Below the pieces are notes generated by a model, which saw nothing but the letters and a program-made list of their open reading frames with translations, was not told the origin of the DNA and did no database searches. Positions 15,528-31,339 of a stretch of 64,000 nucleotides of DNA are shown piece by piece. Source of the stretch: Selaginella moellendorffii (lineage: Eukaryota > Plantae > Lycopodiophyta); NCBI RefSeq assembly GCF_000143415.4, contig NW_003314333.1, positions 248,001 through 312,000 on the forward strand. Direction: 5' to 3'. Within the stretch, counting starts at the first letter, position 1; every line of letters starts with the position of its first letter. A program made the translations under genes and the position numbers.

Positions 15528-18500
15528 CTACTTGTGCTCATGGTATACGAGAAACTCCAGCTCGAAGATCCGTTCCTGGTGCTTCTTGTTCAGCTCTCGC
15601 AGCTCCGCCATGGCCTTGTGAAGATCTGCGTTGGCAAGCTGGAGTTGCTCCAGCTTCGCATTGCACTGCTCCAGCTGCTTTTCCAACTCCGCCTTACCAT
15701 TCTTTGTCTCCGCCTCCAGCTTGGCCATGCGATCCATCACTTCATCTTGCTTCGCCGCCAAGAGGCCTTCCGCATGGACCTTTTTCTCCTTCGCATCTTT
15801 GACCTCGGCCTGCAAACTAAGCTTTTGCTCCCTGGTTTCTTTCACCTCGGCCTGCAAACTAAGCTTTTGCTCCCTGGTTTCTTTCACCTCGGCCTGCAAA
15901 CTAAGCTTTTGCTCCCTGGTTTCTTTCACCTCGGCCTGCAAACTAAGCTTTTGCTCCCGGGCGTCTCTCACCTGGGCCTCCAACTCTTTAACCTCCCCCG
16001 ACAAGGCAGTATACTTGGCCACCAATCCCTTCCCCGCATCCGTGGACACGTTCACCGTGGGTGGCAAACCTGGTGTCAGCTGCGCCCACTCCGCAACCGT
16101 GAGCCCCTCGAGACCATCTGTATGTAACAGGTTAGTTCACGGTCGAAGAAGACTCTCGGCACCTATGACATAGTGAACGAAGTCTTTGGGATCAAGCACG
16201 CTCCTAGTGGGGAGAAGCTTCTGTGCACTCCTCAGGCATTCCTCGACCGTGGCTTTGGCTGGCGCTGCCAACTTTGCGACCTTTGTGAAGGCTAGGTCCG
16301 GCTCCATAAACTCGACACATATCCTCACCTGTGCATCGTGTGTTACGTGGGAAAGTATATGAGAATTCCAAGCGTTACCTCATCAGGGCCAATAGAAGGG
16401 TCCACAGTAGCCTTCGCTTTACCTTTGTGCTTCTCCCGCTTCTTGTTGCCACCCATACTACCTCGTCAAAAACCCTACCCCCGACCCTCTTTATGGCGGA
16501 GAATCACTCCACAATGGGTTCCAGACCGCCACTGTCCTCCACATCATCTTGAACGTCTGGTACTGACTTTGGTTCTCCCAGTGTGTCACCTTCCTCCTGA
16601 AGAAGGGCCTCCTCGTCACCTTCTTGCATCTGCTGTGACGCTGGCTGCTCTTCCTCGTCTTGTCCACAGAAGCGAAGCACAAACTGCCTGAACGTCTGCA
16701 CCGCGGAGTTGACGTCCACCTTCTGCTGCATTAAGTCTTGCAGCACCTCCTTTGAGAAATCATACTCGTCTTTGCTTGCGTTCACTTTTTCTGGGTCGAT
16801 ATCATCTTGGACCTGTGGACACGATGAGTTGATAGTAGTGAATAAATTTCCATAGATTTCTAGTTACCTGTGACCAGGTCTTCTTGAGAAGGTCGAATAC
16901 AGTGCTGGCAGGTGCTTCAATGCCGTGGTTATAGGCTATTTGAGCAAAGGCCTGTGGACTGATGCTGTCTCCTCCATCCGGCATCATCAGCAGTGTCTCC
17001 CTGAACATCCTGATTGCACTTTGCTGCGAGATCGATGAATCTGCGGTAGTGACAATCTCTCGGAACTCGCTGAACGTCAAAACTCCATCTTGATTTGCGT
17101 CTCCGGCAATGAACAGATTCTCCAGCTCGGTTGCCTGAGATACTTTAACATCAGAACCACGTAAAATCAAAAGGCTTTACTACCTTATCCTTGGGAACTG
17201 GCTTGCTGACTTGAATGCTCTTTCTCCGTTCGTCTTGTATGGTGTCCTGGATAAACAAGAACAAGCGAGGACTCTCAGAAGCTGTATCTCCTTTTCTTTT
17301 CCTGTTCTTACCATCTTATGTGGATAGACCGCTAGTATCGCCTCCACAAGCAGGTCCCAATCAACTTTTCGTACTTCACTTTCCTTCACAAGCTTCCTGA
17401 TCTGCAAAGTTTCACAACTTTTACTTTGAAAGGAAAACAGCAAAGACAAGACTTACCTCTGGTGACGCCTTTTCAGTCACTGCATTCTTTGCAACGTACT
17501 TCTCCACGAACGACAATGCTGCTCCCTGGCTTCCAAAGTAGGCAACGAGATTGGGCTCGTCGGCAATGAAAGCGTACTGGGATGCATTCAAGAATATAAG
17601 ACCGTCGTCTTGGTCAGATGGAAGCAGCACTCCTGTTTTGCTTGAAGCTCGCTGAAGGATTTTAAGGTAGAGATAGAGATCGGGCTCGCTGTAGTTGTTG
17701 GTTTCGTCCATGCCGACAAACCGGCTGAAGACTCTGATCTGCCAGGACGTAGAAAAGCATATTAGAAACTTCTCCATTACGGCTTTAATGCCTGCCTACT
17801 TTATGATGCTTCTCAATCTCCTTGTTGGTGATGAGTGTCTTGACCGTCTTAAAAACACCAAAGATCGCTGACTCGCTGAGACCTTTGAGTCCATACTGAT
17901 TAAGCATGAAATCATAGACAAACTCGCAACAAGTTTGCCGCTCATTATTGCACGAGTCATCGACAGAATCTGCGACAATTTTGCTCACGTACACCGACGC
18001 AATTAGCTTTGTTAGCTGCAGAACCGGGAGAGTATCTATAGATCAGGCCGAAGAAACAAAATAACAGAAAGAAGACGATGCTTTACCTGCCGAACGTTGA
18101 AAAATTTTACAGTCTTGGGCGGGTTGTAAATCTTCATCATCTTTGCAAACCCGAGAGGCACGTAAGACTTGAGCTGGGAACCAAATTTGCTTCCTTTGGA
18201 TTTCCTGCTCTTCCTCATCTCACTGGGCCTGCCGCTGCTTGGTCCGCCCTCTATGAAAGAAACTTTTGCGCTCTCTACGGCAACAGAACCCCGCTTCCCT
18301 TGCATCAAGCTCTTGTGCCGCTGCATAAACTTCTCCCTGAACTTGTCGCCCAAAACTGTTCCAGTCATCTCGCAATACTTCTTGAGAAGGACCTCAATCT
18401 TCTCTGCCAATGCACCCTCCATCGGGAGCCTGTCGAGCAAGCCTATAGTGTCCACCGCAAGTGTCTCGAACTCTTTCAAGCGTTCGACGATTGGGGGGCC

Positions 18501-21232
18501 TTCGGCTTTGTCCTTGCCAGCAGCTTCGGGATCAACCCATCCCCCAGCTAGAGCTTTCAAGTCGTCAGCACTCAGCTCAGCTTGTGGAGCTGCTCCTCCT
18601 GCTTCTGCTTCTGCTCCAGCTCCCTCTGCCTCTGCCTTGACCTCTTTTTCCACCTCCTCGCCACCTTTTTCTTTGGCCTCGACTATCTTCTTTGGTGGAA
18701 ATATACTTGGCGGCGCGCTTTGGCATCTTCTCAGTCCCTTGCTGGGATCGGTCTGTGTGTAATCGTCTCGTCGATTTGTCTCTGAAACAGGCGCCGCTGT
18801 CTGCTGCTTTTCACCTTCCTCAAGTTGCTGGAGCTCTTCTTCTGTCAGCTGTTCAGTAGATTCATCGGCTCCTGCTTTCTTGCCAGCTTCTGCTCCCTCG
18901 GCTTGTGCACCTTCGGCAGTAGCTCCTCCGGCCTCAAGTTTCTTGCGCTCCTCCTCCTGTCTCTTCAGCTCGAGTTGCTTTTTAAGTTCCTCCTCCTGCT
19001 GCTTCAGTTCCTCTTCCGTGGGTTCGTGCGTGTATCTGAACGATATCGACCGCTTTTTCAGGTTGACGAGATACTCGTTCCGAGATCTGGGTGACATGTT
19101 CTCCGTGCGACACAGCCGACACCTCTTGATCTTCCTCATCTCAATATCCTTGTCTTTGAGTTTGGCCCGTATAACGTCATACTGGTCCCTGTAAAAGTCA
19201 TGATCGGAAAGCATCCGTGACAGGTGATCTTTCGCCCCTTCTAGATCATCTCGTAGCCGCTTCATTTCATCTTCTGTAGCATTGAGCTTTGGTTCCGCTC
19301 GCACAAGAACCTGAGCGTGCATGCAAATAGACTAGTTAAGGTTTGTAAAGTTAGCACGCTTTCGACTAGTACCTGATTGAAAATACGTAGCAATTGCCTC
19401 CAAAGATGGAGAAGGAGGTTTCCACGCTCTTCGCAATGGATATCCACCTGCCATGTTTATCTAACTCCAAGAGTAGAGCCATGAAAGAAGAATATTTGCA
19501 CACATACCTGACGAACGATTTCTAGGAAGGCAATAGAATGAAGAACAAACGCGGCTTCCACGTTCTCAAAACGTCCATCCACTTTCTCACAATGGTTCTT
19601 TTGCATTGCATGCTGCAGCCAATCTCCGAGCAGTTGCACGTCCTCTCTTTTACCTGGCTGTTTGAATACAAATAATCACACCCGAGGTTTTTCGACTACT
19701 GCAAAGTGTTACCTGAAGAGCAGGAAAGACAACCGTATACCATCTCTTATCGAATGGACTGTAGGTGAACTTGCAGTCGGGTCTTCCCAGAAGTTCTGGC
19801 TGCCAGACAAAAACGTATCAACCGGTATGACTGACAGTGCGAAGAGTACCTGGACGACATACTTGTTCACAACATAGTCCTCGACGGGAATGTAAGAAGG
19901 AAGAGAAGAAGGAGGTGGAGCAGCGCTCTTGTGTGGTTCCAGGGACTGCTGCTGATCCTGTGGAGGGTTGTCCTTTGCCTGTTTTTCAACAGCTACAGGC
20001 TCGTTGTCGACTTCAGTGAGATGAGCAGCAGCAGGAGCAGCAGGCTCAGCGTCCTTGGCGCTAATATCTTCGTGCTTGCTTCCTTCGACCTCGTCAACAT
20101 TCTTAGAGAGCTCGGTACCTTGGTCACCAGGGATTGGAGAGACGACTGGATTAGTGCACTCGACAAAACGGATTATGAGCTCCCTGACTTTCTCGAGTAG
20201 AAGCCGGTCCTTGACTAAGAAACCAGCCTCCGGCGGAACCCTGTTCACCCTGGCTTCCATGGCTTCCCACTCGGCTCTTATCTCGCGGACGTGCTCGCCT
20301 GCAAGTTGAGGGATGGATTCCATCTGCGTCAGACGAGTGCTGTGTGAAGCTGCTATAAACGAGGAGTCCAGTTAACGGTTCATCGATGCCACGAGCACAC
20401 AAGAACGAAAACGAAAAGTTACCTGGATGAACATCTCGCGGATTTCCGTGTCTTTGAGACCAATCGCTTGGAGCAGCCACTGCTTTGCACTGATTGGAAC
20501 AGTCGCCGAGGCCACAGTCCCGGACTTGGTCTTCCGTATAGCATGAGGAACGTTCGACTTTCTCCCGGCGCCATAGTCCGGAGGTCTCAAGTGAGGAACT
20601 GCTCGAACTCCTTCTCTAGAAGCCCCGGTGAGCTTGGTGAGATAGTCGGGAACTTTCATCAGGAGTCCTCTCTTGCAGAAGGTGTCCACCACCTCCTCTC
20701 TCTCCACGACTTTGTCGCGCGGCCTGCTTCCAGAGGAGTAGCCGCCGGGGATCCTCGGCGTCCTCACCGCAGCACACGCCTGGAGCCTCTCGCTCACAAG
20801 CTCGGCCATGTCCGCCGCCTTGGAGCTCCCGCAAGTGGAGCTCGCAACCTCCCTAGCGGCGGCAGCTCCCACCCTCCGCCCCCTCCTCTCCTCCTGGACG
20901 TGCTCCTTCCTCTGGAACCCCGTGTGCTCGTGGCTGGACAGGCGAGTGGGAGTGGTGGACGGACCCCTGTGCGATGCAATGCGGCCCAAATCCACCGACG
21001 CCGATCGCTTGAACACATCGTGGGAGAAGGCCGAGCGAGACGACGCCTGACCCACCTCGAATGCTCGCCTGCTGGGCGACGGCGATCGATGCGACACGGT
21101 CGCCCTTGCCAATGCCGCCCCTTCCTCGCCGCTTGGGAGGCATCGCTTGAGCTTCAGCACGGATCCGCGCAGCCACGACGAGTTGATGCCGCTGCCCTTG
21201 TCCTGCGGCGCCGGAAACTTGTCCAGCAGCAT
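15528..21232 (-). CDS. Large coiled-coil protein with axonemal dynein light-chain-like domain and EF-hands, probably flagellar-associated (multi-exon; single-gene model tentative)
   Basis: In-frame exon chain from ORF 20372-21232 (e.g. intron ending 20324, before MESIPQL). FLEIVRQV..IHCEERGNLLLHLW resembles the Ax_dynein_light motif; EF-hand LFIAGDANQDGVLTFSEFREIV; C-terminal coiled coil. Confidence 0.6.
15802..15958. repeat. Perfect 42-bp coding minisatellite (about 3.7 copies; 14 aa, LSLQAEVKETREQK)
   Basis: acctcggcctgcaaactaagcttttgctccctggtttctttc at 15802, 15844, 15886 and partially at 15928. Confidence 0.95.
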
Positions 21233-21260
21233 CGCGCATTCTCCTCCTCCTCCTCCACGC

Positions 21261-21288
21261 TAGGGTTTAATCCCTCCAAAACCCTAAA
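21261..21288. promoter_or_regulatory. Two oppositely oriented telo-boxes in a 138-bp bidirectional promoter
   Basis: tagggttt (21261) and aaaccctaaa (21279) between divergent ATGs at 21232 and 21371. Confidence 0.55.
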
Positions 21289-21370
21289 TAACGACCGTAT
21301 TGCCGGCTGAAGTGTCATCTTGCGGTTTGAACCCTGGACCTCCTTTTTGGTTTTCGCCCTAATCGTGGCC

Positions 21371-22410
21371 ATGGCCGTCTTGATTTGTGTGCGTCATGGT
21401 GAGACGACATGGAACGCCAGCGGGAAGCTCCAGGTATGTGTGTGTCGATCGATCGATCGGCTACCATGGCATTGACGATTATGGATCCTATTTTTTTTCT
21501 TTTTCTTTTTTGTTGTTTTTTTTCTTCTTGTCAGGGACAATTGGAGACCGATCTAAACGACGCTGGAAGGAAGCAAGCATCCGCTGTATGTTGAAAAGAC
21601 TAGAATGCAGCCAAGAGTCTGTGGAGGTCAGGATGATCAAAGCGATCTCTCTCATTTTTGTCTTTTGGTTTTCGTCTTCTCAGCTTGCGGAACATTTGGC
21701 TAAACAAAGCTCGCAGAAGATCACAGCGGTTTACTCGTCGGATCTTCGCCGTGCATCAGACACGGCCCAGACAATCGCCGAAAAGCTGGGATTGTCACAG
21801 GTAGAGCATGCTTCTCCCATGTGTTCTTGAGAATGTCAAACGTTTTCTTATGGCTTTTGCAGGTGAGCACGACACCACTGCTTCGAGAGCGGCATTTGGG
21901 CAGGCTCCAAGGCTTGACGCCAAAGCAAGCTCGCGAGAGAGAAGCCCACGCGTTCAAGATACTCGCCTCTTCGTCCGGCGACGAACCCATCCCGGTGAGA
22001 ACTAAGGCTCAGTGTTGTGAGTGAGCTCACAGATGGTTTTCTCAGGGTGGAGGGGAGAGCTTCGGTGAGATGCGCGATCGCGCGGCAAGAGCGGCTCAAG
22101 ACATTGCTCGGCAGCACGAAGGTATTCCCAGATCTTCTCCGATCGACACACCCGTTTGATGAGTGTGTGGTCTCTTCTCTTTCTTCAAGGCGAGAGAGTG
22201 GTGGTGGTGACGCACGGTGGTGTTCTTCAGTCCATGCATGTCACCGCGACGGGCAAGCCAGCGCCGGGCCGTGTCCCCAACGCGTCGATCAATGTCTTGA
22301 GCATCTCTAGCGACAACCAGTGGAAGTTCCAGTCGTGGTGCGACGTGGAGCATCTCAAGGGCGTTGGCTTCTTGTCCTCGGCATTTGGAGGTGGCGCCAA
22401 GTCGGGCTGA
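21371..22410 (+). CDS. Histidine phosphatase / phosphoglycerate-mutase-like protein (iPSP-like; multi-exon)
   Basis: VRHGETTWNASGKLQ|GQLETDLNDAG; VYSSDLRRA; LRERHLGRLQG; GGGES; VVVTHGG; SWCDVEHL...AFGGG. Confidence 0.92.
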
Positions 22411-22429
22411 CCCTCTCTTCTTTCTAATT

Positions 22430-22620
22430 GAGACTCTCCATTCTTTAGCAGCCTACGGTCCTGTGCTTGCACTGTCCATGCTCAAATCCTCTGCGTCTTT
22501 CTCGTCAATCTCTTGATCCCGGAAAAGGCAGAGATCCGAACATCACGATCCAGGCGTATGCCCGGAATGCGTATACTGCTCAAGCCATGAATTTCTTTCA
22601 CCAAACAAGGTCACTTGGAC
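22430..22620 (+). pseudogene. Deletion-riddled relic of the 5' end of PPR 25506-27257
   Basis: gcagcct.cggtcctgtgcttgc, tttctcgtcaatctcttgatcc and gatccaggc.tatgcccggaatg.gtatactgc are shared with 25519-25790. Confidence 0.85.
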
Positions 22621-22709
22621 TCCTGAAACGTTATCACTCGCAAATGAGTATGTGTATGGAAATCAACATCAGCATAAATTCTAAGAATATTCACTATCTT
22701 TGTTGGGTG

Positions 22710-24859
22710 ATGGAATCTGTCGATGTTGATACGCTCGGCTTCACCGAGCTGGGTAAGGCTCTGGACAAGGAGTATCCAGTTTTCAATGGCGAACTCGGAG
22801 CTGCCATCACGAAGCACCAAATCACTGGGCGAGTGTTTCTTTCTCTCGACCGCAACCACTGGACAGCCTGTGGTTTGACATTCGAGGCTGCCCTGCAGCT
22901 CGAGCTGCTGAGAGATCTTTTTCTAAAAGGCAGCCGTGTTTTAATAGTTTTTCTGAAGCACAGCACAAATCAACATCTTTATCAATGGCAGCCAAGCAAG
23001 ATTTTGTGGGTCGTGCAGAGTCGGTGAAACTCTCCATGAGAGGCTTGGTGATATGAACTTTTTCACTGTTCTGACTCGTCCCATCTAACTTCCACTTCAG
23101 GCCAGCAATCTGTTTGTTTAACCATCATTCGAGTATATGGGCCGTGACATCGCGCCGAGAGTGGAAAGCTTCATCATGAACAGCCTCCTTGCCGAAGATG
23201 GGCGATCAGTAGATGCACCAGCTTTCGCCGTGATCACTGGCACAGCGGGCTCCGGAAAGACAACTTGCGTAATGGCTGCTGTTGTGAACATGAACATGCA
23301 TCGGAGGTTTGCAAAGGCTCGTGAGAAGAGCCCCGTTCCTCCTTTCTGGGAAGCTGTTAGACAAGTACCAAAGGAAGATGGAGAGGCTGATGGAGACGAG
23401 ATGGAAGCGGAAGAGGAAGCACAGGACAGCTACTGTACGTGGATTGCTCACAGTTTGTCAATGATCCTTTCAAGACGCTGAGAAACAGTCTGCTCCTGGC
23501 TTACATAGACGACAAGCAGGATATGTAAGACTGAAGACTACAGAAACTTGGATGAATTTATTCGACTCGGGACATCTCGGGATCGCTGTAGTTGACGATG
23601 CCAACGCCACTGATGTGGACAAGGACGGTGGAAGTCAAACAGGAATTAGGAAGCCTTCAGTGGCGAAACGTACAGATGCCAGGGATAAGGTCGTGGCTCT
23701 GCTATCTCGTTGTCTGCTTTTCTGTGACGAGTGGGATCAGGAAGGGCCTTGAGCACGATAAACGGCCAGCGGACTTTTTATATGTGGAGGATACGAGCTA
23801 AGTGCACAATGATATGTGTGATCTCATGGCTGCGTTTGTTTCCTACTGTAGGCTCGTGAATTGTGCAAGTATCTAGACCACCAAAAGTTACAAGTTTCAG
23901 TCAAGGAGCTTGCGGACTTGATGTGGTGGACTGGTTTCGTGCCGAGTCTGGTCTACCGGTATCTCTTTGGAGACATGGAACAGGTGGTAGGGGTTATGTC
24001 ATGGCGTTGCTGGCTAAGACGTTGAAGGAGAAAAAAGATACTGACGCTCGCACTGAGATTGAAAAGTGGGTCATGTTCGACAGGCTCGAATAGGATGGAA
24101 CGCTGAGATGGCTACGATATTAGCTGCTGCGTTATACAGACCGCATCTCACGTTGAATAACGGGGCGCAGCTCGTTATAGATCCGGAGGTCGTTGTGACT
24201 GGGGAGGACATTTGTGAGGAGTACCCGAACAAGAGAGTTCTGATTATTCCCAAGGAGTTCAACCACCTCGGGGCGCGTATGTTTTATGTAGCTGGGGGAC
24301 TCGTGGTTGTGATCCAGGTATCGATCAGGATCCACGCCAAGGCGAGGGAACTGGCTGGACAAATTTTCTGCGAATTGGCTGAAAAGTCCGCAGGTCGCAA
24401 GTGCTTCTGGCATGTGGTGAGACATGGGGATATGAAAAAAGGTGGGGATGTGTACGACGAAGTTGTGTCTACGTTCGGTGGTTTTAGTAGCGCTCTCAAG
24501 GCCGTCGATGGACATTGCGATGTTCTGAAAGGGAGGGTTCCAAGAAGAGAGGAGGTTTGCTTTGTTTGATTTCATGTAGATTGAAGACTGATTTGTTATT
24601 GTTTCAGGATTCGTGCGTCGATTGTTCTGAGTACCAGTGTTACTTTGGTGAAGAAGAGCTTCATGACTGGTTCCAGTGCAGTGTTTGCAAGTGCTGGGTT
24701 CACAGACGTTGTGCTGGTGAGAGGTACACTGGGCCCGAAAATATTTTCCAGTGCCTTTTCTGTGATGCGACACCAGTCGAAGAAAAGGGGTCCAGTCACG
24801 TCGAAGAAGAGGAAGGTGTCCGTCTTAGAGGGAGATGTTGGCAACAACGTCCGCATTAA
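22710..24859 (+). pseudogene. SAM - P-loop NTPase - REase-like - PHD gene (Crinkler/RHS-like architecture), disrupted
   Basis: SAM-like KHQITGRVFLSLDRNHWTACGL; FVGRAE; Walker A AVITGTAGSGKT; Walker B LLFCDEWD; LIIPKEFNHLGARMFY...VVVIQVSIRIH; PHD CVDC...WFQCSVCKCWVHRRC...FQCLFC. In-frame TAA at 23119-23121 and frame breaks near 23752 and 24093. Confidence 0.6.
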
Positions 24860-25203
24860 AACCTGATGCGCATCACTGATCCACTTGTGATGGAAGGATC
24901 GGATCGCTGGCGACTCTGGCGACTCTGCAAAAAGTGCTTCATGTCTCAATCAAATTCTCTCATGCCTAGTTCATTCATTGTGCATTTGTCAAGTGTGCCC
25001 TGCAAACATTTCTCCAGGTGGTCCTCGCGACGAAAGACCTTCAAGGCATCCGTGAACAAGAGAGGATGCTGTGAGCAACATTCGTCGGAAAACAACTCGT
25101 AGAGCTTTTTTTACGAGCCCTGGGATCTCCTAATCCACATGCTCAAGAGGGAATCTTTGTCAATGGTACTTAGCGATCTCATCCCTCGAAGAAGCAATCT
25201 ATG

Positions 25204-25455
25204 AAGGCTTAGCTTGCGTGAGAGAAGCACACGCGTTTCGGGTGAGAACTGCCTCTAAGTAGAGATATCTGTCACTGTGAGTGAGCTGCAAGAGCACAAA
25301 TGCCCTACACCGAGTGTGGTATGTGTCTGTTCTTTAGTGGTGGTGACGCACGGTCACGGGCCAGGCAGCCGTGTGCCCAACGCTTCGTTCAATGTCTTGA
25401 GCATCTCTAGCGACAACCAGTCGTGGTGCGACGTGGAGCATTTCCTTGTCCTCGG
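25204..25455 (+). pseudogene. Relic of the 3' half of the histidine-phosphatase gene (copy of about 21910-22380)
   Basis: gagagaagc.cacgcgtt; gtggtggtgacgcacggt; cccaacgc.tcg.tcaatgtcttgagcatctctagcgacaaccag; tcgtggtgcgacgtggagcat. Confidence 0.9.
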
Positions 25456-25505
25456 GACCCCTCCATTCCATCCAAAGAATCCACACTCACAATTCCTTAG
25501 AATGA

Positions 25506-27257
25506 ATGAGCATTGCCCGCAGCCTCCGGTCCTGTGCTTGCCTTGCGGAGGCACGGCAGCTCCACGCTCGAATCATCGGCAGTGGAAGCGGCTTCTTTCT
25601 CGTCAATCTCTTGATCCAGGCGTACGGCAGATGTGGCAGCCCGGAAGAGGCAAGGATGGTGTTCGACCACGAGATCCAAGAGCCCAACATCTTCTCGTTG
25701 AATTTCATGATCCAGGCATATGCCCGGAATGGGTATACTGCGGAGGCCATGGATTTCTTTCACCAGATGCCGCGGAGGGACGTGGTTACCTGGACGTCAA
25801 TGGTTGCGCTTTTTATGCGTGCAAGGCACAAGCAAGAAGCTCAGACATTCTTCTTGAAAATGCCACAGCGGAATGCGATCACTTGGAATGTGCTACTCGC
25901 AGCAAATGCCCAGAATGGAGATGAGAGGTCTCTTGCAAAGGCTACGTTTGATGCGATGCCTGCTCGGACCATCATCTCTTGGAATACAATGCTACAGGCG
26001 GGGTCGGATCCGTCCGCAGTGAGTGATGTGTTTCACAAGATGCCGGCGCGTGATGGTGTTTCCTGGGACCTGGCAGCCTACCACAACCGCGATGCCAAAC
26101 ACTGGTTTGACAACAACCCGGAGAAATCCCATGTCTCGTGGAACATCCTCCATGCACGAACGGATGATTTGGAGCACTGCAAACTTGTCTACGAGAGAAT
26201 GCCCGCACACGGGGTCCTGTCGTCCACTGCCATGATCCAAGAATTCTCTTTGAAAGGGGAGATCAGTAGAGCACAAGGTGTGTTTCATGCAATGCATGCG
26301 CGCAGCCTCGTCACATGGAACACGATGATCTCAGCGTACTCGCAAGCGTTTCAGGTACGTCATGCACAAGATCTGTTTGATCGAGCTCCGCAGCGAGATG
26401 TCATCTCTTGGACTTCCATGTTTCAGGCTCTTGCGACCTTTGGGAAACTTTCGGATGCCAAGGCGGCATTCGACGATATGCCGGAGAAGAATGTAGTTTC
26501 CTGGACGGGGTTACTACTTCTATACTCTCGTGCCGAGAGCCTCGACCGTTCCAAAGCAGCGTTTGATCGAATGCCCAGGCACGACCTTCCTGGATGGAAC
26601 GCCATTATAGCAGCGTATGCTCGAAACGGGCATCTCAAGGAAGCGAGGCAGCTCTTTGAAGAGCTGATGCCGGAGAGAGGAACTTGGTCTTGCAGTTGCT
26701 TGATCGATGCCTACGCGCGACACGGCCAGCTGCAAGACGCGAAGAAACTCTTTGATGATCCTTTGAACACCAGAGACGTTGCCTCGTGGAACTCCATGAT
26801 GGAGGCGTATGCCCTCGACGAGCACAGCACGGAGACCATCCAGCTCTTCCGTGAGATGCAGCTCGACGGTACCACCCCGGACGGCATATCGTTTACCACC
26901 ATTCTGGCGGCATGCAGCCACCTTGGGCGTCCACAGGACGCGCAGCGCTACTTGGAGTCCATGGCCGGTGACTATGGACTAGAGCCGGAGCGAGATCACT
27001 ACATCTGCGTTATAGACAACCTGGGACGAGTGGGAAGGCTCGAACACGCCGAGGAGCTCGTTACTTACATGCCATCTCTGGAGCTGGATGGTGGCCATTT
27101 TGCCTGGAAAACATTGCTAGGAGCTTGTAGGAACCATGGCGATCTGGGACGGGGATGTTACGTGGCCAAGCACGCTCTAGAGCTGGATCCGCAATGGGCA
27201 TCGCTTTACTCTCTCCTATCAAACATTGTCGTTGAATCATTGAATGCTCAAGAATGA
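25506..27257 (+). CDS. PLS-class PPR protein ending in E domain (no DYW)
   Basis: Intronless 583-aa ORF with short-repeat array; HYICVIDNLGRVGRLEHAEEL...AWKTLLGACRNHG...YSLLSNI. Confidence 0.95.
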   Translation: MSIARSLRSCACLAEARQLHARIIGSGSGFFLVNLLIQAYGRCGSPEEARMVFDHEIQEPNIFSLNFMIQAYARNGYTAEAMDFFHQMPRRDVVTWTSMVALFMRARHKQEAQTFFLKMPQRNAITWNVLLAANAQNGDERSLAKATFDAMPARTIISWNTMLQAGSDPSAVSDVFHKMPARDGVSWDLAAYHNRDAKHWFDNNPEKSHVSWNILHARTDDLEHCKLVYERMPAHGVLSSTAMIQEFSLKGEISRAQGVFHAMHARSLVTWNTMISAYSQAFQVRHAQDLFDRAPQRDVISWTSMFQALATFGKLSDAKAAFDDMPEKNVVSWTGLLLLYSRAESLDRSKAAFDRMPRHDLPGWNAIIAAYARNGHLKEARQLFEELMPERGTWSCSCLIDAYARHGQLQDAKKLFDDPLNTRDVASWNSMMEAYALDEHSTETIQLFREMQLDGTTPDGISFTTILAACSHLGRPQDAQRYLESMAGDYGLEPERDHYICVIDNLGRVGRLEHAEELVTYMPSLELDGGHFAWKTLLGACRNHGDLGRGCYVAKHALELDPQWASLYSLLSNIVVESLNAQE

Positions 27258-27267
27258 GAGAGATACA

Positions 27268-27864
27268 CTACTTGTCAAAATCATCATCGTTATGATCGAG
27301 CTCCAAGACATCATCATCACTGTCGCTGTAAACTTCAATGTGATCAAGAGCTCCGTCGTCCCTGAGCTTCCGGAGTTCTCCTCTCACGTCTTTGGAAACC
27401 GCAAGCTTCCGGAGGATCTCGGCCACGTTAGAGAGCTGGCAGTCATCATCGTTATCGCCCTCATAGCTTTCGATCACAATGGCGTTATCCACAACATGAT
27501 CTGGTACCAAATCCCGGTCGTCGTCCACCAGCACCACCTTGCTCAAATCCCGACCAAGCTTGGTCACGTCCTTGGTTAGATCCGCTCCAAAGTCCATGTT
27601 TGATAGTAAGTGCGAGAACTCGGATCCTTTGCACTGGAGCTGCCGCAACGCGTTGGCTGCGTAGTCACTAGGAGCGCTAGTCCACAACACAAGCTCGTAG
27701 ATGTCCGCCATATCCTTTAGAAACTGATCCACTCCTGGCCGCTTGGATATATGCAATCGATCGCTAGTCAAGGGCCATAACAACGTCCCATCCATGTCCA
27801 GGACCAACGTCGCGGGCTTGGAACTTGGTGGAAGAAGAGGACTAGCTCGCCATTCACTCGCCAT
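27268..27864 (-). CDS. FCP1/SCP-like (NIF) HAD phosphatase, intronless, about 198 aa
   Basis: TLVLDMDGTL (DxDxT); KRPGVDQFL; YELVLWTS; KDVTKLGRDLSKVVLVDD; acidic tail. The upstream part of ORF 27268-28251 is antisense to the PPR and not coding. Confidence 0.85.
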   Translation of the reverse strand: MASEWRASPLLPPSSKPATLVLDMDGTLLWPLTSDRLHISKRPGVDQFLKDMADIYELVLWTSAPSDYAANALRQLQCKGSEFSHLLSNMDFGADLTKDVTKLGRDLSKVVLVDDDRDLVPDHVVDNAIVIESYEGDNDDDCQLSNVAEILRKLAVSKDVRGELRKLRDDGALDHIEVYSDSDDDVLELDHNDDDFDK

Positions 27865-27913
27865 CGAATAAAACTCCTCCAACCTAGATTTCTCTCGCGG
27901 GGGCCTTATTTGT

Positions 27914-30604
27914 ATGAGGCCGTGGCAACTGGTGCGCACGAGATCCATCCATGCTTTGAGCGCTCTCCAGGAGCAAGACGCGTTTGCGCAGCTCGTGCGA
28001 TCCTGCCGAGACATATCCCAGGCGAAACATCTCCACTCTAGCATCCTCTCCAGCGCGCACGCTACCAACACCTTTCTCGTGAACCTCATCGTCCAAATGT
28101 ATGGCCGATGCGGCGATGTAAACAGCGCTAGGCAGGTTTTCGATTCGCTTCGGCAGCCCAATCTCTTCTCCTGGAACATCATGATCCAGGCATATGCCCA
28201 AAACGGGCAACTCCACGATGCCAAGCTCGTTTTCGATGCGGTTCCTTGCAAGGATGTTGTCTCCTGGAACGCGATGATAGCGATTTTTGTTCTAGCTGGA
28301 GATGTCGAGGGAGCTCATTATGTCTTTGATTGCATGGACCACCGAAATGTGGTTTCGTGGAACACGATATTAGCAGCATATACCGAGTTTGGGCATATTG
28401 AAACTGTTCTTCTTCTCTTTGAAAGAATGCCTCAAACAAACGCGATATCGACGAATACTCTTATTCAAGCTCTTGCTTGCTCCCACCGTCTTGATGAATC
28501 CAAGTCCCTTTTTGATTTGATGCCCGTTAGAACGGTTGTTTCATGGAACACACTCCTGCAGGCTTATACCTACAGCGGGCAGCCGGAGCTAGTGATCATC
28601 ATCTATCTCCGGATGCCTCATTGGGACGTCGTCTCGTGCTCGTCGTTGATCGCTGTGTCGGACAAAGACGATCGCTTGGGTTATGGCAAGCAGTCCTTTG
28701 ATCAAATGCCTCACCGAAACATCATCTCCTGGACCGCCATGTTTCAGGCGTATGCCCAAACGGGACATCTCCATTCTGCTACAGAGGTGTTTTGCAAGAT
28801 GCCCGAGTGGAATCTAGTGTCCATGAACGCACTGCTCCAAGCGTCCGCAGATCTAGATAGTTTAGAAGTTTCCCAGGAAGTGTTTGCATGGATGCCCGAC
28901 AGGGATGCAGTGTCGTGGACAGTGATGCTCCAGGCAAATGCTCAAGCCGGAGACTTATCCACAGCAGCAACCATCTTCAACGAAATGCCGTGCCGGAGCA
29001 TGGTCTCCTGGAACTCCATGCTGCAAATCTTAAGCCAGAGGGTCGACTCCATCACCTATGCTAAGCTCCTGTTTGATCTCATCCCCCAGCACGACACCAT
29101 CTCCTGGACAACGATGATTGCGGCATTCGCCCAGGCCGGATGCGTGGACGAGGCCTGGGACGTGTTCGCCAGCATACCACAGCACAGCTCCATCTCCTGG
29201 ACCGCCATGATCGCGGCTTTCACTCACAACGGATTCACGAGCGAGGCACTGCGACACTTCGAGTCGATGCCCGAGCAAGGGCTGGCAGCCAAGAACACCA
29301 TCATCTCTTGCCATGCCGAGGCCACGGGCGAGATGAGCTCGAGCAAGCGCGTCTTCGATGAGATGAGCCAACGAGACGTGGTTACTTGGACGGCCATGAT
29401 TGGGGGATACGGTCAGGTTGACGCTCCAGATGAAGCCACGGCGGTGTTTGAGCGAATGCCACAGTGGGATCTCGTTGCCTGGAACGCGCTCATCCAGGCC
29501 TACGCGCAAAACGGCGGGGTCGATGGTAGCAAGAGGCTGTTCGATGCGATGCCGAAGAGGAATCGAGTGTCGTGGAGCACGATGGTGCAACTGGTTGCCG
29601 GGGAGGATCCGGCGGCCGGGCGATTGATGCTGGAGAAGATGCCCCGCCAGGACGCCGTCGCCTGGACTGCCGTCGTCGCGGCATACGCGCAGCTGGGCCG
29701 ACTGTTAGAGATCGGTGATCTCTTCGACAGCGTGCATTGCGTGGATGTGGTGGCGTGGAATGCGATGATCCAAGCCAACTGCAAGGACTCCAACCTCGAG
29801 GGCGCCAAGGCTGTGTTTGATCGAATGCCCAAAAGGAATGTTGTGTCTTGGAATTCAGTTTTGTCAGCAAATGCCCAGAGAGGGTATCTTGAGACTGCGA
29901 AACTGGTGTTTGACTCTATGCCCAGCCGAGATGTGGTGTCTTGGAACGTTATGGTTGCGGGCTATGCTCAGAAAGGGTTTCTAGAGGAAGCTCGGTTCTT
30001 GCTGGAGCAGCTTCCACAGGGCGATGCAACGTCGTGGAACACCATGTTTGATGCATATGCCTTGAATGGGCAATGCTCAAAGGCGCTGGAGCTCTTTCCA
30101 CTCATGAACTTGGAAGGAGTTGTGGCCAACGAGGTGAGCTTTGTTAGTATTCTCGCCGCTTGCAGCCACTTGGGACTTGTCAAGGAAGGATGGCACCACT
30201 TCACTTGCATGACCGACGATGTGGGACTATCGCCCACTCGCGAGCACTACCTTTGTATGGTGGACATGCTCGCTCGCTCCGGGCGGCTTTGGGACGCGGA
30301 GAACTTGATAGGAACAATGCCATTCCCTCCTGATGGTGTGGCCTGGGGGACTTTACTAGCGGCTTGCCGAAACAATGTCGATGTGGAGCGCGGAGCTCGA
30401 GCAGCCGAGGAGGCACTCCAGCACGAGTACGACGTCTCCGGCCCCTACATGCTACTCTGCAGCATGCAGGCGGTAGCGGCTCACTGCACAGGCTCTGAGA
30501 CAAGCGCTCATCGGCAAACTGGCTTAGTTTATCATGAGTTAGAGAGCTCGAGCTTTTACAACGAAGAACGATCAAGCACGAAAGTTACGAGCGTTCGATC
30601 ATGA
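27914..30604 (+). CDS. PLS-class PPR protein ending in E domain, with a non-conserved tail (no DYW)
   Basis: Intronless 896-aa ORF with more than 20 short repeats; HYLCMVDMLARSGRLWDAENLIGTMPFPPDGVAWGTLLAACR. Confidence 0.95.
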   Translation: MRPWQLVRTRSIHALSALQEQDAFAQLVRSCRDISQAKHLHSSILSSAHATNTFLVNLIVQMYGRCGDVNSARQVFDSLRQPNLFSWNIMIQAYAQNGQLHDAKLVFDAVPCKDVVSWNAMIAIFVLAGDVEGAHYVFDCMDHRNVVSWNTILAAYTEFGHIETVLLLFERMPQTNAISTNTLIQALACSHRLDESKSLFDLMPVRTVVSWNTLLQAYTYSGQPELVIIIYLRMPHWDVVSCSSLIAVSDKDDRLGYGKQSFDQMPHRNIISWTAMFQAYAQTGHLHSATEVFCKMPEWNLVSMNALLQASADLDSLEVSQEVFAWMPDRDAVSWTVMLQANAQAGDLSTAATIFNEMPCRSMVSWNSMLQILSQRVDSITYAKLLFDLIPQHDTISWTTMIAAFAQAGCVDEAWDVFASIPQHSSISWTAMIAAFTHNGFTSEALRHFESMPEQGLAAKNTIISCHAEATGEMSSSKRVFDEMSQRDVVTWTAMIGGYGQVDAPDEATAVFERMPQWDLVAWNALIQAYAQNGGVDGSKRLFDAMPKRNRVSWSTMVQLVAGEDPAAGRLMLEKMPRQDAVAWTAVVAAYAQLGRLLEIGDLFDSVHCVDVVAWNAMIQANCKDSNLEGAKAVFDRMPKRNVVSWNSVLSANAQRGYLETAKLVFDSMPSRDVVSWNVMVAGYAQKGFLEEARFLLEQLPQGDATSWNTMFDAYALNGQCSKALELFPLMNLEGVVANEVSFVSILAACSHLGLVKEGWHHFTCMTDDVGLSPTREHYLCMVDMLARSGRLWDAENLIGTMPFPPDGVAWGTLLAACRNNVDVERGARAAEEALQHEYDVSGPYMLLCSMQAVAAHCTGSETSAHRQTGLVYHELESSSFYNEERSSTKVTSVRS

Positions 30605-31033
30605 CGACGACGAGGAGCTCAGCCCCTGCAAGCAATTGAAGTTGAAGCTGTATGCCTCGTAGCGCATGTAGCACACGTCGGTGCTCGTCTTCATGCACAG
30701 CCTAGCTCCCTTGGAGAGTGGCGCTGCTCGATCGAGATTCGCCTTGATAGTCTGCAAGCATCCCTTGCAGTTGCTGCCTTTGATGCAGAGGGCGAAGCCA
30801 CTGACAGTGTTGGGCGACTGGCCGTGGCTAAACTCCGAAGAGACAGCCTGGGGAGCATGATCCAGCAGGACTTGATACACATCTAGCCAGTTCTGCTGGA
30901 ACGGACTTCCCAAGCTCGTGTTACCTGTGTTGTAGTACATGAGGTTTGTTCCAATGTCGTCGGGACAACCGTCGGAGGCGTCTCCGAAGCTCATGGCGTG
31001 GATCAGCAGCAAGATGATGGCGAGGAGAGCCAT
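30599..31033 (-). CDS. Secreted single-domain Gnk2-homologous (DUF26/stress-antifungal) protein
   Basis: Signal peptide; GSPFQQN; GFALC..C..CL; GAR; CYMRYEAYSF. Overlaps the PPR stop by 6 bp. Confidence 0.85.
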   Translation of the reverse strand: MALLAIILLLIHAMSFGDASDGCPDDIGTNLMYYNTGNTSLGSPFQQNWLDVYQVLLDHAPQAVSSEFSHGQSPNTVSGFALCIKGSNCKGCLQTIKANLDRAAPLSKGARLCMKTSTDVCYMRYEAYSFNFNCLQGLSSSSSS

Positions 31034-31339
31034 CCTCAGATTTTACTAAGTACCACTTACTCGCTCGCTCTTCACAACGAAACTAGGCGAGCACCAATCT
31101 TTTATATCCACAAGGAAGCTTGACTTAGTCCCAAGTTGGAGCGAGCACCACTGAAAATGACTCGATGCAATAGCTTAATGCAAGCACATCCTTTTCTCCA
31201 TTGCTAGAATCGTGCTTCTCATTCAGGTAGTTAGCAGTGGAATCGTGAAAAGAGCAAGCCTCCGACTGGAAACTTTTCGACTAGAGCTCCACCGCGACGC
31301 TGGGACTGTCCGGCTTGATCCATTCCACTTCAAGGTAGG

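Follow-up and report, generated by a model that had tools for sequence, protein, structure and literature searches.

The stretch of DNA analysed here, 64,000 nucleotides of Selaginella moellendorffii scaffold GL377637.1:248001-312000 (GCA_000143415.2) and hereafter called the window, carries a decayed gene of unusual composition. Over positions 20272-28102 the window agrees with that scaffold in every letter. It lies on the forward strand between a histidine-phosphatase gene (His_Phos_1) and two PPR genes. An original prediction, made from the sequence of the window, had described it as a dead element of the Crinkler-RHS (CR) type. We find the gene to be genuine but dead, one of a small family in Selaginella whose domains are combined in an unusual way. 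The label "Crinkler-type element" is plausible for it; "mobile element" is unsupported apart from a long flanking duplication.

Domain order and intact relatives

The decayed gene can be followed, exon by exon, through a SAM-fold head, a P-loop NTPase, an alpha/beta domain and a PHD finger (Table 1), each exon having been searched as a single unspliced piece. The domain order read originally is real, including the D...QxS..K pattern of the alpha/beta domain, and from the NTPase onward it is common to intact paralogs in the same species.

Table 1. Features of the insert and of its flanking duplication, with tblastn matches to the intact relative P0005, in window coordinates
Feature	Position	Strand	Remarks
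Left duplication copy	22201-22620	+	Working phosphatase last exon and 3' end; ruined PPR start with several deletions
Insert	22621-25336	+	About 2.7 kb, carries the decayed gene
Head exon	22710-22929	+	73 codons from ATG; SAM fold
Candidate intron 1	22930-22990	+	61 nt, phase 1; GC..AG here, GT..AG in the other haplotype; read from sequence, without RNA support
Candidate short exon 2	22991-23047	+	Contains "FVGR"; 21-bp in-frame gap in the other haplotype
Intron 2 remnant and exon-3 start	23048-23127	+	TAA 23119-23121 where this copy lacks 16 bp of the other haplotype, which is open there into FEYMGR
NTPase first part, frame 1	23128-23434	+	FEYMGR 23128-23145, Walker A 23239-23262; tblastn match with P0005 residues 72-124
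NTPase remainder	23418-23797	+	Four frames here, one frame in the other haplotype; Walker B 23582-23599
Intron 3	23798-23851	+	54 nt; donor CT here, GT in the other haplotype; position of the intact paralog's second intron
Exon ARELCKY...GDMEQ	23852-23983	+	Roughly aligned to P0005 residues 343-385
Candidate intron 4	23984-24083	+	100 nt, GT..AG; spliced out in the model deposited for the other haplotype
C-terminal alpha/beta domain, putative restriction-endonuclease-like	24084-24554	+	phmmer and tblastn matches to paralogs (tblastn 28% over 169 columns)
Intron 5	24555-24607	+	53 nt, GT..AG, pyrimidine-rich; absent from the intact paralog
PHD-finger exon	24608-24859	+	C4HC3 24614-24763 and stop codon; frame intact here, broken by a 10-bp gap in the other haplotype
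Right duplication copy	25337-25795	+	Ruined phosphatase last-exon fragment; start of the intact 583-aa PPR gene
P0005 residues 72-124	23128-23283		tblastn; FEYMGR to Walker A
P0005 residues 213-244	23418-23513		tblastn
P0005 residues 269-296	23570-23653		tblastn; Walker B
P0005 residues 496-655	24090-24539		tblastn; C-terminal alpha/beta domain

Searched exhaustively with phmmer, 1.84 billion cluster representatives yielded four proteins that match the C-terminal piece (24066-24566). Two are the deposited models of the locus itself, one per haplotype (P0002, which is SELMODRAFT_425134 on GL377637.1, and P0001 from the other haplotype); the others are a low-complexity repeat protein and P0004, matched at E 1.6e-4 and 32% identity. 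The tandem gene pair SELMODRAFT_410202/410204 includes P0004 and P0005, the latter (727 aa) being the fuller of the two, and a second pair on another scaffold, 437668/437669, is probably allelic to it; the four genes are represented by P0005, P0007, P0009 and P0008. All relatives come from S. moellendorffii and are named "uncharacterized" or "Zinc finger PHD-type domain-containing protein" in UniProt. No kin beyond this species emerged from the exhaustive search with the C-terminal piece, from word-based searches with the paralogs or from a profile search, P0005 and its cluster being the only additions. The exhaustive protein search gave no further copy closer than 32% identity, and the 64-kb window holds no paralog of the decayed gene.

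The matches of P0005 to the window form a colinear chain, after which the PHD finger stands at the same place in both. Locus and paralogs thus have F[ED]YMGR, Walker A, Walker B, the alpha/beta domain and the PHD finger in the same order, at 28–39% identity, and past the NTPase an intron falls at a corresponding position. The paralogs differ in being three-exon genes of 715–734 aa with a non-SAM head, in carrying, after the NTPase and before the alpha/beta domain, about 100 residues that neither haplotype of the locus has, in keeping a D and a K where the locus has an R and a gap, and in lacking an intron before the PHD finger. The expectation that intact paralogs would share the whole four-domain order is accordingly borne out in part: protein searches reveal one intact tandem pair with the NTPase-to-PHD order at about 30% identity, but its head is not a SAM domain. 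At the paralog locus itself, a Ty3/gypsy-type retroelement with gag, protease, reverse transcriptase and integrase frames lies about 1 kb downstream of SELMODRAFT_410204 (positions 11218-14713 of L002, the locus of the intact paralogs). In the other pair, the deposited model P0009 (SELMODRAFT_437668, 836 aa) shows a weak Cupin_1 match after the PHD finger, which probably reflects a gene-predictor fusion with a neighbouring gene.

The head exon was described originally as SAM-like, and at the level of the predicted fold this holds. Its AF2 model (pLDDT 85.5, pTM 0.72) has five helices. Foldseek against the PDB returned almost exclusively SAM domains at TM 0.5–0.7, with E-values of at least 0.59, weak as a 73-residue query leads one to expect. 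More than 40 of the top 50 VIA-align rows were SAM/PNT domains, and 10/10 ESM-Atlas shape matches belonged to the SAM_1/SAM_2 families (TM 0.67–0.72). The exon is 10–28% identical to its structural matches, which include CNK2, BICC1, Scm/Ph, L3MBTL3 and Arabidopsis Tric1, and it departs from these SAM domains in matching neither SAM_1, SAM_2 or SAM_PNT nor any other Pfam family at E up to 10; a sequence search of the PDB gave no match.

Walker A of the NTPase, GTAGSGKT (23239-23262), is present as originally described. Walker B was misplaced: the proposed LLFCDE (23714-23731) is out of frame, the homologous frame reading CYLVVCFSVTSGIRK and matching TTVICASVRSSLRK of P0005, and the true motif is IAVVDD (23582-23599), with which IFIFIDD of the paralogs aligns. 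Both Walker motifs are colinear with the paralog. The FVGR motif (23003-23014) also fell away: at this point 21 bp are missing in frame from the other haplotype, and nothing in the intact relatives corresponds to the motif. What locus and relatives do have in common before the P-loop is F[ED]YMGR, present as FEYMGR at 23128-23145. Pfam, NCBIfam and PADLOC searches over the window pieces, the longer open frames of the other haplotype and the intact paralogs yielded only generic P-loop and weak PHD matches. The best Pfam match of the NTPase was nSTAND_NTPase5 at 24.6–26.2 bits (E 2.4e-5 and 7.7e-6), below the curated cut-off of 34 and covering only profile positions 34–68 of 145, the Walker A neighbourhood, followed by AAA_16, nSTAND3 and NACHT.

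The alpha/beta domain contains the segment noticed originally, NHLGAR...VVVIQVS (24261-24323), which aligns with the C-terminal alpha/beta domain of the intact relatives. Those relatives read NH[IL]GAD, and it is the D of this motif, expected to be catalytic, that R (24276-24278) replaces in both haplotypes, as had been proposed; in the window copy, a 15-bp in-frame gap at 24321 deletes the stretch where they read VAKDA. The intact relatives display a helix E...D...(12 residues)...QxS..K pattern at nuclease-like spacing. Judged by this motif pattern and by secondary-structure order, the domain may have a restriction-endonuclease (REase)-like fold. By sequence, the C-terminal piece matched no PDB structure. 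The AF2 model of the paralog's domain, built on a six-row alignment, was unusable (pLDDT 38), and its helix-strands-helix-strand order carries no weight.

At 24614-24763 the zinc-ligand pattern of a C4HC3 PHD finger, likewise part of the original description, is present. A single-sequence search of the PDB placed PHD fingers first (PHF23 at E 0.0056). With a profile built from the locus and its relatives, the top ~30 PDB matches were PHD fingers (best E 5.9e-4), PHF13, PHF23, PHF8, PHF2 and KDM5B falling at E 6e-4 to 5e-3. The locus resembles these fingers in its C4HC3 spacing and CxxW[VY]H core, including the tryptophan that forms part of the methyl-lysine cage in well-studied PHD fingers. 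Unlike them, the locus (10 bits) and its relatives (17.6–19.1 bits) score below the curated Pfam cut-off of 24, and histone binding is putative.

Decay and silence in both haplotypes

The same region occurs on GL377630.1, which we take as the other haplotype (locus L001). It is colinear with window positions 17268-31072 (13.8 kb) and has the phosphatase gene, the decayed gene and PPR sequence in the same order. Outside the gene the haplotypes differ by 0.6–1.8% (2.8% in one PPR kilobase) with almost no indels, whereas between 22 and 25.4 kb they differ by 2.3–3.5% and by 32 indel events. Of the 18 haplotype indels in the coding span, 11 are not multiples of three. The indels between window 22000-25400 and L001 5135-8190 are mostly 5–21 bp long and accompany about 110 substitutions, or roughly one indel per 3–4 substitutions, seemingly more indels than neutral decay would leave, and perhaps the sign of a mutational process acting locally.

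In the window copy, a 16-bp gap at 23119 creates the TAA on which the original prediction had remarked, and deletes the acceptor and the start of the NTPase exon. Gaps of 11, 8, 11 and 1 bp at ~23530, 23586, 23697 and 23774 then scatter the NTPase over four frames, so that P0005 residues 213-341 correspond to one frame in the other haplotype and to several in the window. The donors of introns 1 (GC) and 3 (CT) are mutated here and read GT in the other haplotype. That haplotype has lesions of its own, among them a 10-bp gap just past the start codon and another of 10 bp within the PHD finger. Four defects are common to both copies and are for that reason older: the R for D, the absence of a lysine where relatives have VAK, the loss of about 100 residues and a frame change near 23420. 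The frame breaks reported originally are of two kinds, several being true frame changes and some being short GT..AG introns. A 65-nt purine-rich intron at 23365-23429 was considered as the cause of the frame change near 23420 and rejected as possible but unsupported.

Over 22648-24820, three RNA runs contained no raw reads, against a depth of 10–40 over the adjacent phosphatase gene. At 6/7 places where reads over that gene vary, they carry the allele of the other haplotype, so these runs sampled both haplotypes. The verdict that the copy is dead stands on the 11 frame-shifting indels, the mutated donors and the lack of reads, and it can be extended to both haplotypes.

The insert and the flanking genes

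The gene had been placed between PGM/PPR duplicates, and the long direct duplications are real. The repeats at 22201-22620 and 25337-25795 consist of blocks 88–100% identical, with several deletions, and each runs from the phosphatase gene's end across the spacer into the PPR gene, of which it takes in the first ~290 bases. The insert, which both haplotypes carry, is bounded exactly by these 420–460-bp direct repeats of host-gene sequence; its 3' part (24860-25336) is without a recognised feature. No terminal inverted, direct or long terminal repeats were found at its ends, and it shows no DNA similarity to the locus of the intact paralogs. It thus lacks the marks of a DNA transposon or a long-terminal-repeat element: terminal repeats are absent, the flanking repeat measures 420–460 bp rather than being short, and no closer copy exists among annotated proteins. 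Nor is it a processed retrocopy, because introns are kept (at least the 53-nt GT..AG intron at 24555-24607 and the 54-nt remnant at 23798-23851).

The histidine-phosphatase gene, directly upstream, is transcribed up to ~22466 and has four read-confirmed GT..AG introns of 51–98 nt. Its first confirmed intron is spliced alternatively, with a major joint at 21585/21684 and a minor one at 21624/21682 that appears in 3/3 RNA runs. At window positions 21243, 21779, 21914, 21955, 22097 and 22425, RNA and DNA mismatch in 30–50% of reads; these are the GL377630.1 alleles, not RNA editing, and both phosphatase alleles are expressed. Downstream, the first PPR gene (25506-27257, 583 aa) is intact. Like the adjacent one (27914-30604, 896 aa) it is intron-less, and the two have 53-nt repeat units in common. 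The PPR kilobase with the 2.8% haplotype difference, at 28–29 kb, is about twice as divergent as neighbouring kilobases.

Origin, kinship and meaning

We consider it probable that the locus is a decayed, silent pseudogene of a gene detected only in S. moellendorffii, which entered as a DNA-level insertion between the phosphatase and PPR genes with a 420–460-bp target duplication, and whose two alleles are both decaying. The ancestral product would have had four parts, namely the SAM-fold head, the P-loop NTPase, the alpha/beta domain, possibly restriction-endonuclease-like, and the PHD finger. About 2.7 kb of foreign DNA, introns included, would have been inserted at the boundary of the two host genes so that the target came to stand on both sides; on the simplest reading this would have been one event, in which a break whose staggered ends lay about 0.45 kb apart was filled in and joined to the foreign DNA. 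Staggered-break repair or a replication-based event, rather than a transposase, best explains the duplication, we infer; alternatively, the target may first have been duplicated in tandem and the insert then have landed precisely at the junction. The insertion, carried by both haplotypes, predates their split, and since then each allele, with constraint relaxed, would have gathered frame-shifting indels of its own. As for the intact relatives, their SAM or other head might serve assembly, the NTPase might regulate the C-terminal domain, and the PHD finger might tether the protein to histone H3 tails.

Several observations weigh against this account. The linkage of the SAM exon to the NTPase is suggested, rather than proven by a transcript, through their order on one strand, an open frame and splice signals of compatible phase, and the intact paralogs carry a different, non-SAM head. 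That insert and duplication arose together is something we infer. One run of uncertain type has three short, unspliced, low-depth contigs inside the gene, so trace transcription is possible, although these contigs may be carried-over DNA. GL377630.1 could in principle be a recent segmental duplicate instead of an allele.

Another possibility is that the SAM exon was captured from an unrelated source, or is open merely by chance, and that only the NTPase-to-PHD part forms one ancestral gene. P0005 and P0007 have a non-SAM head and the paralog locus holds no head homolog; the exon is left out of the models deposited for both haplotypes, in the other haplotype FEYMGR can be reached from a separate ATG through an open frame, and no RNA joins head to NTPase. 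We nevertheless judge this quite unlikely: the exon folds confidently as a complete SAM domain from its ATG, is part of the insert, shares the strand of the NTPase and precedes it by about 200 bp, and in the other haplotype is joined to the NTPase exon via two GT..AG introns of compatible phases. That the gene is alive and every apparent break an intron is barely conceivable. Short GT..AG introns of 51–100 nt are normal here, several breaks are such introns and a 276-aa model (P0002) has been deposited; this model, however, contains neither Walker motif and little of the conserved body, the 11-, 8-, 11- and 1-bp gaps disrupt a stretch that is a single frame in the other haplotype and in the paralog, reads are absent, and indel density is far above that of the flanks. 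A different view of the family would make the NTPase a STAND/NLR-like signalling ATPase, unrelated to Crinkler/RHS, within a plant-specific immune or chromatin sensor. The ranking of Pfam matches headed by nSTAND_NTPase5, a helical region after the NTPase in the paralog, and the presence of SAM and PHD domains, which are typical adaptors, speak for it. It seems unlikely all the same, as the matches stay below the cut-off and near Walker A, the intact paralog shows none of them, the NTPase is followed by no repeat or sensor domain, and language-model neighbours favour Crinkler/RHS-like clusters.

Kinship of the NTPase and alpha/beta module with Crinkler/RHS proteins is plausible, with the balance about even, given the domain order, the E...D...QxS..K pattern and the language-model neighbours. 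In review summaries (PMC5289972, PMC6131194), CR proteins have a variable head, then a P-loop NTPase, then a further alpha/beta domain, as the locus does. The NTPase-REase pair is given there as about a quarter of CR-protein C-termini, with varying head domains (PMC5289972, PMC6131194, summarising Zhang et al. 2016), and CR-type proteins are reported to occur in land plants (PMC5289972). At the locus, a separate N-terminal head would be provided by the upstream SAM-fold exon, on the same strand and with phase-compatible splice signals, and the P-loop NTPase is evident from Walker A and B, its profile matches being generic P-loop only. The nuclease-like spacing in the intact relatives is a further likeness. 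Language-model neighbours, which are leads only, include oomycete and euglenozoan clusters for the C-terminal piece (one with RHSP) and, for P0005, Mucoromycota and red-algal clusters at 0.92, a Crinkler-head cluster at 0.88 and an RHSP cluster at 0.86. Against the kinship, the Q position of the pattern is a K in P0004, and the window pieces, the pieces of the other haplotype and the intact paralogs gave no match to the Pfam models Crinkler PF20147, RHSP PF07999 or RHS_N PF20445 at E up to 1–10. The C-terminal PHD finger and the SAM head also set the locus apart, in that neither is mentioned in the review summaries (PMC5289972, PMC6131194); its nuclease fold is putative, and the copy is dead and plant-encoded. 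Of the original classification as a plant CR-type gene, then, the four-part order stands and the family assignment finds no counterpart in the Pfam models. Among the papers accessible to us, none mentioned Selaginella together with Crinkler.

A stronger proposal is that the locus is a Crinkler/RHS-type mobile element moved by its own NTPase-nuclease, with the PHD finger guiding insertion and the flanking duplication as its target-site duplication. The order of head, NTPase and alpha/beta domain is in keeping with this, as are the neighbours in oomycete, euglenozoan and Mucoromycota clusters, some of them Crinkler/RHSP (0.86–0.92), the link of NTPase-REase modules to prokaryotic transposons noted in review (PMC5289972, on Zhang et al. 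2016), and above all the position of the insert exactly between its repeats, a striking feature and the only pointer to mobility at the locus. We regard the proposal as very unlikely, since the insert has no terminal repeats, keeps its introns, shares no DNA similarity with the paralog locus, matches none of the three Pfam models at E up to 10 and has no copy closer than 32% identity in the exhaustive protein search. To our knowledge, eukaryotic Crinkler/RHS-class proteins are not known to transpose themselves. A yet bolder conjecture, which we hold to be highly improbable, is that the Selaginella genes with SAM, NTPase, nuclease-like and PHD parts are plant-resident descendants of Crinkler/RHS conflict modules and continue to spread as DNA, their own NTPase-nuclease cutting widely staggered sites in PHD-marked chromatin and leaving target duplications of several hundred bp, with the present locus as a fossil of the process.

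For the preferred reading, a decayed gene inserted as DNA, direct biological importance is small, the locus being a dead single copy, and the intact pair SELMODRAFT_410202/410204 is the better experimental object. The locus does offer independent evidence for a SAM head and a PHD tail in one gene. If the Crinkler/RHS kinship is true, it would represent a plant-encoded effector-type NTPase-nuclease that has both a SAM domain for assembly and a PHD finger for reading histones; none of the papers within our reach describes such a combination. As a clean example of a gene-sized insertion with a 0.45-kb target duplication, it bears on how such genes move; as a dated relic, older than the haplotype split and decaying in both alleles, it shows that such genes are gained and lost.

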